A stretch of DNA of 64,000 bases, from positions 9,548,001 through 9,612,000 of the forward strand of contig OU015568.1 of NCBI GenBank assembly GCA_907165135.1, read 5' to 3'. The first letter of the stretch is position 1. Every line of letters starts with the position of its first letter. Shown in pieces: positions 1 through 12,031 of this stretch. The notes beneath the pieces are model-generated. The model searched no databases and was not told the origin of the DNA. It saw only the letters and a list, made by a program, of their open reading frames with translations. This stretch comes from Oikopleura dioica. Its lineage: Eukaryota; Animalia; Chordata. The translations under genes and the position numbers were made by a program.

Positions 1-3000
1 TCCAGACGTACACTTCTCCGCGCTCGCATTTTAGTTTAGGCATGCGTTCTGAATATTACGTTTTGTCAAATAACTAATGTGTGGGTTTGGGTAGGGTTAA
101 GTCGGTTGAAGTTCTTTTTTACCTTTCTTTCGTTGTTTCTCGGCGTCCCGTTCCTCCTGGTCGTCTTCTGTCTTGACCAAAATCTCTTGAATATTTTGCG
201 CAGTTGCTAAACTGTGCTGCTGTAAATTGTTGCTCATTTTTGTGTTATTCGGATCGTGGGAGAGTTGCCTCTGGAGAGAGACTTGCATAGGTTGTGGTTG
301 GTGCGGATGAGGGTCCACTTGCATCATATGGGCATTGTTCGGGTTCACTTGCATATGATGCGCGTTCATCATGTGCATGGTGGACTGAAAAAAGAGTTGA
401 AATTTTCAACTTGAAAAGTGGGTACGAAGAGGGTGTTCTTACGTTTGGATGGGCAGGCTGAACTTGAGGAGAATGAAGAATTTGAGGTATTCGTTGTTGG
501 TTCGGTTGTCTATCACCTGCCTTAGGCAGCCTAGAAAGTATAAGTTAATCTAAGTTTAACATAAATTGTTTAGCTTACGGTCGCGCCATAAAAGATTGAT
601 GTTGTTGCTGCTGCGGTTGGTGATGATGATTTTGGCGATTTTGGTCTGGGTTGTTGAGCGAAAGGTTCGGTTCAAAGTGTTGCGGCAGCGCGATATCGAA
701 GTCACCGAAACTCGTGTCGATATCGAGATTGAGGCTGTGCTCGGCATTAATCGTGAAATTGAAAGCAGGATCCGCCTTGACCGAGTTCAACGACGAGCTA
801 TCATGATGCGATGAAACGTCCATCATCGCCACAGCTTGGCGCGATGTTCCCGGTTGATTCGTGCGGATCGGTGTGGTTCGGATAGCTTGTTGTGTGCTTT
901 GGGGGCTTTGGGAAGGTAAACACTGTGACTGAGATTGGAGTGGGCTTCGGAGGAACGAGGGCTCCTCCGTTTTGATTTCTTGCTTCATGCTGGCCGGACT
1001 TGGCAGCGAGGTCGACTGCGAACGCTGTGGTGGAGGAAATGAGTTGGATATAATCTAAAGTCCCTGATATATTGTTTTTAGGTGAGTTTTACCTGAATTG
1101 TGTCCATTTTTGAGGAGTGCTGTAAGTTGTTTTGATTTTGATGTTGATGATGGTGCGTTTGATGATGTTGCTGTGGTTGTTGTTGTTGATGATGGTGATG
1201 GTGTTGATGATGCATTTGATTGCTCGAAGAAGCTTGCTGCAGACGAATAGGAATCTGATGAGGCACCACCGACATTGGATCACCAGGACCAGGCGATGGT
1301 GGTTCCAATTTAATCTGAGCAGGAGCAGAGTGTTGTCGATGAATCCCTTGCTGCTGCTGGATGCCCATGCTTGTCGGTTGCCTTTGCTGCTGGACTTTCG
1401 GTGGTGGTGGCGACATCTGCATCGGAGAGACATTTGGTAACTGGCTGGAGGAAGAAACGCGGGGAGATGAAGCGTGCGAGGGCAGTTGTGTAGTAGAGGA
1501 GGAGGAAGTGGAAGTTGGGGGAGGAACGTGCTTGAGAGGAACTTGAGGGCTTTTCTGCGGCGAGGGAGACGATTTTGCCGCCGAGTGTGAGTTTTTGTCC
1601 GTGCTATGGTGAGACGTCCGTTTTCTGCGCGACTGTGAAGCTTCTTTCTTTTCCCAAGCGGAGACAAATTTTATTTCCTCGCCTTTATGCTCCAATTCTT
1701 CATGCTCCTGAAATCGTCTAAATCTGAGACGTAAAAATAACTCTACCTGGCGTTGGTCGAGTGTAAAAAATAAGCTTGAGAAATCGGGCAAGCCGAGGCC
1801 ACTTTCTTTCGCCTCCTTCGCCTTGTCGATTCCAATATGATAGCATTTCAAGCAAAGGACGAGATTTTTCGAATGCTCAATTTCATTCTCTTTTTTGTGA
1901 ACTTCCGTAATGTGCCGCCGCCAGTAATCGGCGCGGATAAAGTTGATACCGCTCTTGGACGGATCTTCGGAGCGAATGCAGAAGGGACACACAACTTTAC
2001 TGAAAAGAAACGAGAGTTATTTGCAAACGGATTTGGAAGAGTGTTTACTTGAATGATTGCTTGCTCATTGACCACCGATAAGCACCACCTAAAGTTTTTA
2101 TAAGAATTTTTACCCTCTAAAATTCTCTGTAGATTTTTTTCTTCATGCATTTTCAAAAAGATTCTCTCCACCATCCGACCTCTTTTTGGGGATCAAAGAA
2201 AGGCCAGAAAGTAGAGAAAATGTTCTAGCTAGAGTAACTTACCCTGGCCGCACTTGAGCTTCTGTAACTCAGGATCAATACGTCTCTCTGCTCTGGTGGG
2301 TTTGTTTTCTGGCGTTGGAGCTTTTACTGTTGTGGGAGATGCCCTGATTTCCATTTTCGGCGTTTCTGTTGGTATTGGAAGACATGTTGTTTCCACATGA
2401 ATTTTGATGTGTTCATCTTGTTCTTGTAGTTGACAGTTTTCACTCTAAATAAAGCATGAAAAAGAGGGCACCGTATTACTGTACTTGTAATATTGTACAG
2501 TGGAAAATTGTATCACTGTACTTGTATTAGTGTACAGTATTGTATCACTGTACTTTTCCCTGTGAACTCAAAAGTACAAACTTACAATGTACAGTGATAC
2601 AATACTGTACACTAATACAAGTACAGTGATACAACGGCAAAAATTTAAAATCGCGAATTTACGGGGCTAGGATTTTTTTTTTTTAAATTATTATTTAATA
2701 TTCAAATTTTCAATATATTTTTTCATACAATTTTTATTTAATGCGCGCGGCGCGCGCAAATCCCTATTTTTTAATAATATTAATGAACTAAATTAAAAAA
2801 ATACAATAAATTATATATATAATTTCTTATACAATTTTTATTTAATGCGCGCGGCGCGCGCAAATCCCTACAATTTATATTCCAAAATCTAACAAAATAT
2901 GGGGGGGACTATATTTTGGTAGCTAGGGGCGGGGCGGGGGTAGATTCCACAAGGGCTATTTAATGACGGCCTATATAGCGTTTTTCACGTTTTTTCCCAA

Positions 3001-6000
3001 AAGTGTGTTTTATTGTACTGCGAAAAAAATCTAGAATCTATGCCCAAAATCTAACAAAATAGGGGGGACTATATTTTGGTAGCTAGGGGCGGGGCGGGGG
3101 TAGATTACACAAGGGCTATTTAATGACGGCCTATATAGCGTTTTTTACGTTTTTTTCCAAAAGTGTGTTTTATTGTACTGCAAAAAAAGTATCTTGACTT
3201 CCAACCGCAAAATACTAGCGGAAGCTAGGAGTAGGATGGGGGTAGATAATGACGGCCCTTATTCTAGGTACTTACGACGTTTGTCAGATAGTTTACATCT
3301 ATGGCAGTAGCTGTGAATTATATGTCATGCTGTGTATCTACTTGCATGAGTAATCTTTTTCATTTCTAACTCATTTCAAACCGTCCGCGCGTTTGCTGAA
3401 GAGGGTTAACACGGGCGCAAGAAGAATGAACATGAAATTGGTTTTGTCGCTGAGAGAGATGGACAAGGAATATAAGAAAGAGTACATTCAGAATGTAACA
3501 TTCTACTCAAGCGGCGACCGGAGCCTGAAAATGGCGGGAATGGTCAAAATTAAGGAAAAACTCAGAGGCAATTCAAGCAACAGTGGCGAGGGAGAAATCG
3601 AGTTGATTTTGAATGCGACGATCACGATCAAAACTGGAAAACTGGAATGCTATCCATTCTTGGAAAGTTGTCCTTGCCAAAAGCGAGACAGCAAGTTAAA
3701 CAGAAGATGTCCAACCAGAAGAGGATGAAAATCGACTGAAGAGGCAAACAACAAAACGATCGAGTTTCGACAGACTCTTTTCTCGGCTTCATTGCTCGGT
3801 AAATTCTGACAGGGAGAAATCCATACGCTTCTTCTGCTGTTTTGCTCAAAGCTCCGATAACTTCTGCAAGGGAGTTTTCAGAAGCACCGATGTTGAGTCT
3901 AGCTTGATTCGCAAACAGAAATTTGACAGGCTTAGTTTTGGAAGCATCCGGATTAGGCACACCAGTTTCGACGTCTTGGGAGGCCTCCCAGGTGGAAACT
4001 CAAAGAAACTCGATCACTTTGCGCTCGAAAGCGAGCGAAAGCGAAATTCGGCGGTGAATTCGACTGACTCTAGCGTTACAACTTTTTTTCTTCCTGCATT
4101 GGACGTCGATTTGAACTACATGTCGCATGGAAGCGGGGAAACTCATCGCCGCGCGAAGCTTTACCCAAACGTCGTAATCGGCTCCATGCCCAAAGAGATG
4201 AGCATTTCATCCTTGTTCCTCGAATATCTCAGTCAAAGTTTTGACATTCTGGACAAGAACGAAGTCAACACTAGCAAGGAGCCGGAAGACACGGATCAAA
4301 TTGATCTACGAAGCGGCGCCGATCACAATTTCGAGCAAAGTTCAGTCCAGTCTTTCCCCGTCGACGTCGTCGTCCACGCCAAAGTAAAGCCCTCGACCGT
4401 GCTGTTCTCTTGTCAACCTAAAGGAAAGGTCGAATGCACGCTCCGAGTACTGCTGACAAACATGGTCTTCTCGTCACCGCCGTCGACCTGACGCGAAAAA
4501 GTCCGGATTGAATTTGGCGATTCAACTGTCTGATTTCGCTCTCCGTGTGAATCATCTTTACGAAAACTCGTCAAAAGGATGTTTCCACTTGAATTTCGAA
4601 GGCATTTTAATCAACATTTTGAGACTGCACGTCTCTGAAAAGCTCCTCACAATTTCTGTTATCTCCGACATTGGCCAGGCAAATATCAACTACGACATGA
4701 GATGTTTGTCGGAAATCCTCGGCTTTCCAAAAGCTTGGTACAATAGATCCATCGCAAGACGCCTTTTCCTCATTGAAAGTAGCCGCGCGAAGCCGACAAA
4801 CGAAGCTGCTCCTGTCCAGCCGAATCATAATAACGAAAAAAAGGAAACTGCTGTTAGAGTTTCCACAGTTCTCCGAGAGTTGCGAGTCGATATGAACATC
4901 GGAAACGTTCTCGGAAAGACGGTTTGGGTGACAGAGCAACTCGCATATCATGGCGCTTTTGACATGAGAAGCAGTAGAAAAAATGACATCAAGACTTTGG
5001 TTTCTCTTGCGAAGACGAAGATCGAGTCGCGATCAGGACTCCTAGGAGGAGTGATTTCGATAAGTGGTTTCAATGGCGCTTGTTTTTGGCGAGAACGAAG
5101 CACTCAAGATTCAGCTCACGAAATGAAGGTAAATCTTTGTCAACTCTTTAGGATTTTGGTTAGGGTTGGAAGAAAGTCAGATTTTACTGATAGGCCCCTT
5201 GATAAGCTTCGAAAAATAACCGTATTCTCTTTAGGTCTCCCTGGATGAAGTTAGCCTGCGATTGGAATACCACTCGACAGTAATTCTACTTTCGAAGCTG
5301 AGCGATGCACAACTGTTCGTCATCGACGAGAGCTTGTTGGACGAGAGTCCTCCACGGGCAAAGGCGAACATCGACATGCGCTGGGGCGAGTCGATCTTCT
5401 TCTTTGCAAGTCGAATTCGAAGAATCTCGTCCAAGGCGGGCGCAAAGTCAAGGACTTCGTCAAGCAACAGATCAACACGGGCAGCGAGGCCTTCCGCAGC
5501 ATGTTCGCTCACAGCTCGAATTACGAAGAGAAACGCCGCGGCCCTGTAGAAAAATCGAACGACGACAAGTACCAGCGCCACTGGCCTCCGATCTTTAATC
5601 GCCACCCAGTTACTTCGTATCATCTCGGCGGCGAGTCTCGCCTCCGCGGTCAGGAACTGTCAATTGTCTGCTTCGACGGGGATTTCCGATCGGACGATCA
5701 CTGGGTCTTCATTTCCGTTCATTTGCTAGATATTTCTCTCTCCAGCGATGTTTACTCCGCGCCAGAAGATGATGCCCAAGATCGTCTCAATATCTTCCTT
5801 TTCCAGGTAATTTTCAATTGCCTGTCTCTTTATTTCATAATTGCCATTTTCATTTTTAGACGTTCATCTTCAACCTTGGTCTTTACATGCCTAGTCTAAA
5901 ACGAAAAATAAATTTTCAGCAGTACACAATATCGCATTTTCACAGTTGAATTGAATGAAAAATAAAATAGCTATTAGAAAGTTAGAAGTGGGGCCTATTA

Positions 6001-7233
6001 TTTTGTCTGCAGTACAGAAGAACACACTTTTGGGAAAAACGTGAAAAACGCTATATAGGCCGTCATTAAATAGCCCATGTGGAATCTACCCCCGCCCCGC
6101 CCCTAGCTTCCAAAATATAGTCCCCCATATTTTGTTAGATTTTGGGGCATAAATTCTAGATTTTTTTGCAGTACAATAAAACACACTTTTGGGAAAAAAC
6201 GTAAAAACGCTATATAGGCCGTCATTAAATAGCCCTTGTGGAATCTACCCCCGCCCCGCCCTAGCTACCAAAATATAGTCCCCCCATATTTTGTTAGATT
6301 TTGGAATATAAATTGTAGGGATTTGCGCGCGCCGCGCGCATTAAATAAAAATTGTATAAGAAATTATATATATAATTTATTGTATTTTTTTAATTTAGTT
6401 CATTAATATTATTAAAAAATAGGGATTTGCGCGCGCCGCGCTCAATAAATAAAAATTGTATAAGAAATTATATATATAATTTATTGTATTTTTTTAATTT
6501 TGTTCATTAAAATTATAAGAAAATAGGGATCGCGCGCGCCGCGCGCATTATATAAAAATTGTATGAAAAATAAATTATAATTTAAAAAAATAGAAATAAA
6601 ATTTATTCTAGCCCTATTAAATCTGGATTTAAAATTTCGCCGTTGTATCACTGTACTTGTATTAGTGTACAGTATTGTATCACTGTACTTGTATTAGTGA
6701 AGACAAAAAAATTGTGTTCACTATTACAAGTACAGTAAAACAGAAGTACAGTGATACAATAATGTCGAAAGTACACTAATACAAGTACAGTGATACAATT
6801 TTCCACTGTACACAAATGCAAGTACAGTAATACGGGGTACTCATGAAAAATGCATAAATAAATACGATTAATTAATTGATTAATGGATTACCCTCAGCCA
6901 AAGTTGCGCATGTTTCTTGTATTGTTCTTCCTGTTCCTTGTATGTTGGCAGCGCTTTTTCAATTTGCTCCAGCTCAGTTTCCGAAAAGGTGCCGATCTCC
7001 AACAAAAGCCCTGAAATAAAAATATAACCACCCGCATAAATAATCAATTTTCAAACCTTTATAACCTTCAGGGCCGCTGAGACAGCCGATTAGATTCTGC
7101 CCTTCAGTCTGTTTTATCAGCTTCTGGAAGTCGACAGGCGGAGTCGACCAGGCCTTCGGCATGCTACTGTAGTAACTTCCGCCTGTACTGCTTTTCAGCT
7201 TCTGGAAGTCTGTGCTGTGGATAGTCCGAACCC
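1..7233 (-). CDS. Multi-exon Gln/His-rich protein with C2H2-like zinc-finger motifs (probable transcription factor). It runs off the window start, and its true 5' start is not identified.
   Basis: ORFs 97-378, 575-988 and 1078-1992 (CPFC...WRRHITEVH; polyQ/H tracts) are joined by short GT-AG introns. The exon ending at 2447 (SENCQLQEQDEHIKIH) joins in phase 0 to an exon ending at 6892 (...HAQLWLR|gtaatcc). A further exon lies at about 7055-7233. Confidence 0.7.
2471..3182. repeat. Left arm: palindromic GTATCACTGTAC module, about 110-bp AT-rich/GCGCGCGGCGCGCG units and 2 units of about 137 bp
   Basis: Direct reading. The unit ccaaaatctaacaaaata...gggctatttaatgacggcctatatagcg...gtgtgttttattgtactgc occurs twice. 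Confidence 0.9.
3372..5885 (+). pseudogene. BLTP1: Internal fragment of BLTP1/KIAA1109 (tweek) from the C-terminal region, intron-containing, truncated at both ends
   Basis: The motifs FPVDVVVHAKVKPSTVLFSCQP..VEC, DIGQANINYDMRCLSEILGFPKAWYNRSIARRLFL and QRHWP..GGESRLRGQELSIVCF match recalled KIAA1109 sequence. GT-AG introns are retained at about 5129-5232 and 5807-5859. Frameshifts occur near 4490 and 5385. The fragment ends about 120 bp before the right arm. Confidence 0.8.
6008..6835. repeat. Right arm: inverted copy of the left arm with one extra unit of about 110 bp
   Basis: Reverse complement of 2471-3182. It has three GCGCGCGCCGCGC units versus two on the left. Confidence 0.9.
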
Positions 7234-7862: not shown

Positions 7863-9447
<1,585 letters not shown>

Positions 9448-9604: not shown

Positions 9605-12031
9605 TTATTCTTTCTGGAGGACGATGCAAGCGCGGGAAGGAAGGTAAATGTTGAGCGATTGGGCACAATTATCAGATTCATCGGGAGATGTGAAGAATTC
9701 TTGATCTTTTGCTAGTCGAGCGTGGCCGTGGAAACGCTCCTCGTCTGAATCAAGAACGAGTTGGTATTTCCCTGGCTCCCGGACGCCGAATTGATAGTCG
9801 GAATACGACTGAAAAGGGTAAAATGAGATAGGAGAAGGAAAGTACCTTGGAAGCGTGGAAGTTGAATACAAAGATGCAATTCGCACGATCGAAGATGATC
9901 ACTTTGTCACCCTCCGATTTCCTCGTCGAATAACCAGGCGGAGCAGAAAGCCAACATGTTTTCTTTTCCAGGTCATTTATTGCCGAGTCAAAATTCTCCA
10001 AAAATTGATAACGAAGCAGAGAATCTTCAGCAAGCGAAAACTGTCGTCGACAGTGCTAAAACAATCGATTAAAACTTGGCCTTGAATATTTTTAAAAGCA
10101 AATCATTATTGATTCTAAAAAATCGATGATTACCTGATAAGATTCGCCATTTCCCTTTCTCGGAAAATCTAGCCACTCTGGATGGCCAAATTCGTTTCCG
10201 ATAAAATTCAAATATCCTTCTCCGCCAAGCGCGTGGACCAGCAGTCTTATCATCTTATGCAGGGCCATGCCACGGTCGATAACGTCTGTTCTTTCGCTAA
10301 GAACGCTCATGTTCGTGTACATCTGCGCGTCCATCATCCAGAAGGCTAGCGTCTTGTCTCCAACGAGCGCTTGGTCGTGTGATTCTGCGTACGCAATGAC
10401 TTTCTCGCCATATCTTCGATTCTCCAGCGTGTGGCAAATGTGTCCAATGTTCCAATCTTCGTCTTTTTGTTCTTTGAGTAGCTTGATCCACATGTCCGGT
10501 ACGGCCATTCCCAGGCGGAAATCAAAGCCGATTCCTCCTTCTTCAACTGGTCGGCACATTCCTGGCATGCCAGAAACATCTAGCAAGAAAATACGAATCA
10601 AATCATTTGAAAATTGCTTACCTTCGGAAATGGTCGTAAGAAATGGATAAGTTTTATGTAGAAAATCATTAGCCAATTGAAGATAAAGGATCGATTCTTC
10701 ATCAACTTGCAATCCAAAGTATTCCGAGTAATTTCCAGTGAAGCCAGTTCCGATTCCATGATGATGGTAAAGCATTGACGTGACTCCATCAAATCTGAAT
10801 CCATCGAATCCAAACTCTTCGACCCAGTATCGACAGTTCGAGAGCAAAAATCGCCTGACTTCCCAGTCATTGTAATTGAAGATTCTAGAGCCCCACTGAG
10901 CATGATGTCCTCTTGCTCCTCCATGGAAAAAGCAGCTGTCAGTTCCGTCAAATTCGTTTAACCCGTCCGCGACGTTGGAGCTCGCATGAGAATGGACAAT
11001 GTCGAGAAGAACTTGAATTCCCAAACCATGAGCGCAGTCGATCAGTTCTTTGAGTTCATCAGGAGTGCCAAAGCGCGAACTGGGTGCGAAAAACGAAGTC
11101 ACTTGGTAACCAAAACTTGCGTAATAGGCATGCTCTTGGATGGCCATCAGTTGGATTACGTTGTAACCGTTTTTAGCAATTCGCGGGAGGACGTTGTTTG
11201 TGAAGTCTGCGTAAGAGCTGATTCCTTTCTGAATTTCAGGGTCACGATTTGCCCAAGAAATTAATAAAAAGCCGCTTTGAATTTCGGAAAGATGTCTCTG
11301 TTTTCAAGTTTTCATGTCCCTTTCCTTATCAGAAGCAATACCAACATGAGCTTCGTAGATTTTCGGCGCTTTGGGCTTCTCCGGCCTGTCAAACTTCGCT
11401 TCATACTTTTCTCTTTCTCCAGGGTTGTAGAAATGCCAATCGTAGACGACTTCTTTGGGTTCTTGAAAAACGTATTTTGCCCAGGGGAAATGCGGTCGAT
11501 CAGTTGACCAGTAGATTTGACCAAGATAGTGAGCTTGATCTTCGAATTGTGCGGAATTCGGCATGAACCATCTTCGTTTGGTGGAATTCGAATACTCCAT
11601 TTTCCGAAATCTTCGGCTGAAAACGCGTATTCCGTGCGTTTCCAATCGTTAAAATCGCCTCTGAGCCAGACTGCCTCGGCTCCTGGAATCCATTCTTTTC
11701 AAATCAGGTCTTCAAACTTTTCAACTAAAAAGAATCAAAATCAAATGTTGAAGGCATAAATTTTTGAGACCTGTTTCCCAAGCCAACGATTTCTTTATCC
11801 GGAGTCACATGGAGCCCAAATTTTTCGTAAGAACGGGTGTACGATTCTAGCGTCTCGGCAGCTTCGATTTCAGACTTGGTCGAGAGGAATTTTCGGTAGC
11901 GACGATCGATGTCAGATTTGAAGGGTTGAAGATATTCGTCATTCTTTTTTTAGCGATGAAAATTGATAAAATTCAATCATTTTTAACCATCTACTTTTGA
12001 GTTGAATTACTAGAATTACCATAGGTAGCAT
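9605..12031 (-). CDS. GBE1: 1,4-alpha-glucan branching enzyme, multi-exon; start codon approximate
   Basis: [72 protein letters not shown]. Confidence 0.95.

Follow-up and report, generated by a model that had tools for sequence, protein, structure and literature searches.

A probable foldback-type DNA transposon of Oikopleura dioica carrying an intron-containing BLTP1 fragment in a mosaic of host-gene pieces

Introduction

Capture of host-gene DNA by DNA transposons is well documented in plants and sparse in animals, where the captured pieces are usually ~200 bp long. The Pack-MULEs of plants belong to the Mutator superfamily and make target-site duplications of ~9-11 bp; the foldback element Galileo makes one of 7 bp. 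The locus described here lies in a 64,000-nucleotide window (the whole stretch of DNA analysed, C1:9548001-9612000) from the genome of Oikopleura dioica, a tunicate. Positions 2464-6842 of this window, 4,379 bp, are very likely a non-autonomous foldback-type cut-and-paste DNA transposon that carries host-gene DNA, including a fragment of BLTP1, in its middle domain.

The closest described systems are the Pack-TIRs, gene-capturing elements with terminal inverted repeats (TIRs), of which Tan et al. 2021 (PMC8277862) reported 370 from a set of 100 animal genomes, most of them hAT or Tc/mariner. Their median capture is 224 bp, the foldback case Ssk-FB4 is included among them, and either gap filling or FoSTeST was proposed as the mechanism (PMC8277862). 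Oikopleura is absent from that survey, and a literature search found no paper naming Oikopleura together with foldback. Foldback elements have mostly been placed in Mutator, although some belong elsewhere, Galileo for instance in the P superfamily (PMC4079207). Reported target-site duplications are 8-10 bp for Tetris (PMC4079207) and 9 bp or more for FB4 (PMC8277862).

Results

Genome-wide searches took in 64,281,565 bp in 19 contigs. A repeat search of the window revealed inverted pairing between 2464-3262 and 5999-6842 in several blocks of 75-98% complementarity, including 203 nt at 96%, 119 nt at 93% and, at the extreme ends, 72 nt at 90%. The 8-bp sequence ATGAAAAA is present in perfect copies directly outside both ends, at 2456-2463 and 6843-6850, and the element is therefore delimited as 2464-6842. 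Its left terminus is GAGGGCACCG and its right terminus, reverse-complemented, is GAGTACCCCG. An earlier note on this DNA had proposed a foldback element with modular inverted arms at 2471-6835; the arm pairing and the duplications confirmed the element, while the proposed ends proved 7 nt too short on each side.

Perfect 8-bp duplications were found at the exact arm ends of all three full copies in the genome (ATGAAAAA in the window, TTAAAAAC and GTAAACAG in two sisters), and all three fit the pattern nTnnnnAn. The presence of three such duplications at unrelated sites shows real transposition. The features of the foldback class were all observed: long modular terminal inverted repeats, a target-site duplication bordering the outer ends, and insertion of the copies at unrelated sites. 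Each arm is ~0.8 kb long and is composed, from the end inward, of 37-nt subrepeats, 104-nt units and ~160-nt units. By itself, the terminal 37-nt subrepeat domain forms a hairpin in a DNA fold (-56.5 kcal/mol, z = -13.8). The 104-nt units contain a GC-rich palindromic core and number 2 in the left arm and 2.6 in the right, and there are ~2 of the ~160-nt units on each side. Left and right arms diverge by 4-8%.

The core contains a partial copy of BLTP1. Open reading frames (ORFs) at 3904-4491 and 4508-5248 match Pfam BLTP1_C (PF25040) with E = 4.6e-15 and 3.2e-28, respectively, and the window matches span profile positions 866-1426 of 1938 in a whole-genome profile search. Only the window copy and one gene on contig C2 match BLTP1_C anywhere in the genome. 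With its open exon of 2,760 aa and its matches to BLTP1_N, BLTP1_M and BLTP1_C, the C2 gene is the full-length parent, for which the earlier note had advised a search. Exons were searched separately, by reference. A complete BLTP1 frame with N, M and C regions was found in the C2 gene; the window copy is partial and interrupted by a stop and indels.

Alignment of window positions 3968-5872 to the C2 parent gave 93.4% identity across 1,925 bp (part b of the fragment), and positions 3448-3659 are 88% identical to the parental stretch directly upstream of it (part a). Captured BLTP1 sequence totals 2.15 kb, is 93% identical to the C2 gene and is truncated at both ends. Two parental introns are retained at 5127-5236 and 5808-5858, each with a 19-bp deletion, and the alignment is colinear through both. 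The copy was therefore made at the DNA level, and retention of both introns rules out a retrocopy. The Pfam matches and the C2 alignment thus agree with the doubly truncated, intron-containing fragment described in the earlier note, and the retained introns and the C2 parent support the DNA-level gene capture that it had proposed.

BLTP1 is not the sole cargo, as had been supposed, but one part of a three-gene mosaic. Positions 3660-3966 are 98.4% identical to C1:10167409-10167715, an exon of an ankyrin and KAP-NTPase gene, and lie in the opposite coding sense; the donor ORF of this Kidins220-like piece matches KAP_NTPase at E = 3e-30 plus Ank repeats. A TMEM26-like piece at 3395-3447 is 92% identical to C4:6052179-6052231, where the donor ORF matches Pfam Tmem26 with E = 3e-16. 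The donors of both pieces are single loci, at 92-98% identity. The inner stretches at 3263-3397 and 5876-5998 correspond to inner parts of the arms in the sister copy on contig C4. No transposase was found in the core, which is wholly assigned to donor loci or to inner arm parts of the C4 sister and therefore has no room for one; a transposase in the core is excluded on these grounds, in agreement with the transposase-free core of the earlier note. The element thus contains host-gene fragments with parental copies elsewhere and lacks a transposase, as Pack-type elements do. The features of the element are listed below by window position.

2456..2463, no strand: left target-site duplication ATGAAAAA, identical to 6843-6850, fits nTnnnnAn
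2464..3262, plus strand: left inverted arm, terminus GAGGGCACCG, 94% identity with the C4 sister's left arm
2464-2650: left-arm terminal 37-nt subrepeat and hairpin domain
2704-2877: two left-arm 104-nt units
2882-3188: about two left-arm 160-nt units, plus a partial third
3263..3397, plus strand: left inner (middle-domain) segment, outside the inverted repeat, 88-90% identical to the inner part of the C4 sister's right arm
3395..3447, minus strand: TMEM26-like exon piece, 53 bp, donor C4:6052179-6052231, 92% identity
3448..3659, plus strand: BLTP1 fragment part a, 88% identity to the C2 parent (L037 5830-5631)
3660..3966, minus strand: Kidins220-like exon piece, 307 bp, donor C1:10167409-10167715, 98.4% identity
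3968..5890, plus strand: BLTP1 fragment part b, exon and two introns, C2 parent 93.4%, Pfam BLTP1_C
5876..5998, minus strand: right inner (middle-domain) segment, 89-92% identical to the inner part of the C4 sister's left arm
5999..6842, minus strand: right inverted arm, reverse-complemented terminus GAGTACCCCG, outer part at 95% identity with the C4 sister's right arm
6000-6318: about two right-arm 159-nt units
6316-6584: 2.6 right-arm 104-nt units
6643-6842: right-arm terminal 37-nt subrepeat domain
6843..6850, no strand: right target-site duplication ATGAAAAA

The insertion site lies between a His/Gln-rich gene and an enolase gene. The left neighbour (575-1992, minus strand) is His/Gln-rich and has no Pfam match. 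The enolase gene occupies 7863-9432 on the minus strand, ~1 kb to the right of the element, with its stop at 7863 (Enolase_C, E = 1e-57); the next gene, at 10092-11147 and also on the minus strand, encodes an alpha-amylase catalytic domain.

A genome-wide search with the arms identified two further full copies, giving a family of three full copies plus fragments. The sister on contig C4 (C4:12988844-13015069) has the same termini, is 26.2 kb long and is flanked by the perfect 8-bp duplication TTAAAAAC. The sister on contig C1 (C1:11017553-11022616) is 5.1 kb long, with arms ~75-79% identical and the duplication GTAAACAG. The 26-nt terminal subrepeat was detected genome-wide only in the window and C4 copies and in one internal fragment, and a search with the diverged arm returned no new family loci in the genome. 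A short remnant of a right-arm end, with no partner arm, is located at C1:5380359-5380583.

Cargo of the C1 sister consists of three colinear pieces of the gene at C2:9456621-9458778 (89-98% identity), with a 1.2-kb TOP3-like fragment from C1:9707931-9709173 (92%; Topoisom_bac, E = 3.7e-25) between two of them, together with pieces of C2:6891268-6891842. The earlier note had suggested looking for arm copies with different cargo; the C1 and C4 sisters are such copies, each with its own duplication and different contents. Different host fragments in each member are a hallmark of Pack-type capture. A ~190-bp repeat within the C1 sister's cargo (L038 ~5053-5262, where C1:11017553-11022616 corresponds to L038 2054-7117) occurs in dozens of copies of 72-77% identity on all large contigs and is SINE- or MITE-like, that is, similar to a short interspersed or a miniature inverted-repeat element. 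A more distant foldback-like element of 8.7 kb at C2:997256-1005919 has 1.4-kb modular arms with a weakly similar 160-nt module, is flanked by the 7-bp repeat GTCTTGC and carries Tra1/TRRAP-like (Tra1-ring) and dynein heavy-chain-like (dynein-stalk) ORFs.

Within the C4 sister, at least 17.2 kb of interior sequence occurs only once in the genome, and none of its 20 largest ORFs contains a Pfam domain. This sister could represent either a block moved by macrotransposition or a giant element whose content is orphan. Small arm-derived fragments are also present inside it. Between the window and C4 copies, the outer arm parts match on the same side (left 94%, right 95%) and the inner parts match crosswise, so that the middle segment is flipped, as expected from recombination between long inverted arms.

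The pattern nTnnnnAn is that of hAT target sites, and the 8-bp nTnnnnAn duplications favour hAT; the transposase would act in trans. The hAT dimerisation domain was detected at seven or more loci that share 91-98% identity with one another, and tandem repeats of ~30 bp adjoin the domain. Its loci include C1:636914, 641782, 732634 and 737494, C5:13847453, and C4:380299 and 393172, and probably represent a young hAT family. MULE-domain matches in the genome were 13 in number and weak, with one above the cut-off. No match to PF21787 (P-type) was obtained in the genome, a weak negative, as the control genomes also lacked a match. Duplications of Mutator/Phantom elements are usually 9-10 bp, compared with 8 bp in three of three copies here. 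Taken together, a hAT source is about as probable as all other superfamilies combined, Mutator/Phantom would be the next candidate at a distinctly lower level, and any other superfamily appears unlikely.

The junctions of the cargo were resolved by an ungapped three-way comparison, in which each of the five joints showed 0-5 bp of shared bases. Such microhomology suggests that templates were switched while a break or gap was being repaired. At a single exact base the BLTP1 template is broken by the 307-bp Kidins220-like piece; the parent runs without interruption across L037 5633|5632, and CCA/CCAGT is found on both sides of the joint. Such a joint is the expected trace of a polymerase that switched template and returned via microhomology. 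The Kidins220-like piece differs from its donor at 5/307 positions (1.6%), far less than the BLTP1 exons (65/1,158 and 26/571, about 5%), which hints at stepwise additions.

Read in the parental frame, the BLTP1 copy has one stop, at 3551, and four frame-breaking indels: a 14-bp insertion, a 2-bp deletion, a +1 change (~4487) and a -1 change (~5391). The stop, the 14-bp insertion and the 2-bp deletion are all located in part a, and the +1 and -1 changes in part b. The Kidins220-like piece, which aligns as a 310-bp insertion, additionally disrupts the copy.

Discussion

The arms, the duplications and the sister copies argue for a foldback-type transposon loaded with host-gene DNA, and several observations weigh against that reading. 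Each cargo is single-copy, the same cargo not being found at two or more sites as in the multicopy subclass, and movement after capture is therefore not demonstrated. A search for an autonomous partner gave none; within 1.5 kb on either side, the hAT-domain loci have no termini in common with the element. Termini of hAT elements are usually CAG/TAG, so the GAG start of the element is atypical, and its GAG termini look more Mu-like. No empty-site allele was found, metagenome scans with the terminal motif and the predicted empty-site junction and exact-ORF look-ups being blank, although these blanks carry no weight. Finally, comparison of the copy with its parent, one of the checks suggested in the earlier note, gave a ratio of nonsynonymous to synonymous substitutions (dN/dS) of ~0.2 by the Nei-Gojobori method, with differences at the three codon positions of 25:13:61. 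This value is below the 0.5 or more expected if the parent alone were constrained and is lower than simple neutral decay would give.

Although the low ratio looks like constraint on the copy, other evidence argues against constraint at the protein level. Across 206 residues, it is the copy that shows the derived state in ~10 of 10 polarisable replacements, at otherwise conserved residues, and changes between copy and parent run from GC to AT in 60 cases and from AT to GC in 22. The derived replacements, the stop, the indels and the GC-to-AT bias indicate that the copy is decaying without protein-level constraint. The outgroups for polarisation were BLTP1 fragments 54-68% identical from marine metagenomes, and a large protein search with the copy ORF returned only such fragments, in the same identity range. 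These metagenome fragments (P0001-P0008), 54-68% identical to the Oikopleura sequence, probably derive from other larvaceans. The third-position excess may possibly stem from divergence of the donor allele or from a higher mutation rate at G/C sites. The BLTP1 copy is a decaying passenger, and nothing suggests a new gene.

The cargo most likely arrived by template-switching repair synthesis. According to Deng et al. 2018 (cited in PMC11067885), classical end joining has been lost in O. dioica, and induced breaks are repaired by microhomology-mediated end joining. The element would have inserted with formation of the 8-bp target-site duplication, using transposase supplied in trans. Capture may have started from a gap left by excision or from breakage in the middle of the long palindrome. 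Repair synthesis in a host without classical end joining would have switched templates at short microhomologies, and the middle domain would have been filled by copying unlinked host genes (TMEM26-like, BLTP1 and Kidins220-like).

A less likely, though still serious, alternative keeps the same element and changes the route: capture occurred by FoSTeST, as proposed for the foldback FB4-Ssk case (PMC8277862), and the Pack element moved to this site already loaded. The duplication does bracket the loaded element, but the genome contains no further copy with this cargo, single-copy Pack-TIRs of animals are mostly ascribed to transposition-independent gap filling (PMC8277862), and the difference in divergence between the Kidins220-like piece (1.6%) and the BLTP1 exons (~5%) suggests stepwise additions. 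A role for the cargo is very improbable. Under that proposal, which takes up the antisense RNA suggested in the earlier note, read-through from the enolase gene or transcription of the arm hairpins would yield antisense or double-stranded RNA acting as a regulator of the parental BLTP1. The geometry, with the BLTP1 piece on the plus strand between two minus-strand genes, would suit antisense transcription, and copy and parent have 36 exact runs of at least 21 nt in common, the longest of 77 nt. The copy nevertheless decays like a pseudogene, and the sister copies hold unrelated fragments, as passengers would; most probably the cargo is a functionless passenger.

Origins that dispense with a transposon altogether have even less in their favour. 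The very small family and the uniqueness of each cargo could be accommodated by a local rearrangement scar, formed as an inverted duplication around a segmental BLTP1 copy or by two independent solo arm insertions. This explanation is hardly tenable, since a perfect 8-bp direct repeat brackets the whole unit here and at two unrelated sites, and the inner arm segments beside the cargo are common to the C4 copy. Arms found as solo insertions had been named in the earlier note as evidence that would overturn its proposal. The arms are not solo: one 8-bp duplication encloses the entire unit, and the two sisters have their own duplications and different contents. The least credible origin is an assembly artefact in which long reads were joined into a palindromic chimera. 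In its favour, the assembly was made from Nanopore data (PMC8008620) and long palindromes are difficult to assemble; against an artefact, the arms differ by 4-8% with unequal numbers of 104-nt units (2 and 2.6), the sister copies have the same architecture and the duplication is clean. The misassembly against which the earlier note had cautioned is therefore argued against by the structure of the arms.

In a very compact chordate genome, every small member of a small foldback family carries a different mosaic of host genes, with pieces of up to 2 kb. The readable junctions amount to a clean natural archive of template-switch repair in an animal that does without classical end joining. In addition, the 26-kb C4 sister is a lead on the movement and reshuffling of chromosome segments by transposons in a species with scrambled gene order. 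That the foldback family moves large single-copy chromosome blocks, with the C4 sister as a macrotransposon, is a speculative and rather unlikely idea; if true, macrotransposition and template-switch repair would contribute directly to the extreme gene-order scrambling of O. dioica.

Among known systems, the element resembles non-autonomous, Ds-like hAT elements in its 8-bp nTnnnnAn duplications in three of three copies and in the presence of hAT dimerisation domains in the genome, and the 26-kb duplication-flanked C4 sister recalls hAT macrotransposition. It departs from hAT elements in its GAG termini and very long TIRs, and no hAT transposase with matching ends was found. With plant Pack-MULEs it shares long TIRs, the lack of a transposase, multi-gene chimeric cargo and retained introns, but it differs in its 8-bp duplication with a hAT-like target pattern and in its tiny copy number. 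In architecture it is like Drosophila FB, Galileo, Tetris and sea-urchin TU, which have long, modular and internally repetitive inverted arms (PMC4079207, PMC3573991). Like known foldbacks, which are mostly non-autonomous, it has a variable middle domain and arms that recombine; unlike them, its middle domain is filled with host-gene pieces.

The closest counterpart is Ssk-FB4 of Drosophila melanogaster, likewise a transposase-free TIR element of foldback type with a target-site duplication and a partial host-gene copy made at the DNA level, for which template switching has also been proposed. The duplication here is 8 bp as opposed to 9-10 bp in FB4 (PMC8277862), and the present cargo, unlike that of Ssk-FB4, is single-copy and has no protein-coding potential left. 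Compared with animal Pack-TIRs in general, the capture is 2.15 kb instead of a median of 224 bp and forms a three-gene mosaic. The element fits the animal Pack-TIR class and is a good new example of it, not a new kind of thing, and it stands out within that class by the size of its capture, its three-gene mosaic and its readable template-switch joints.

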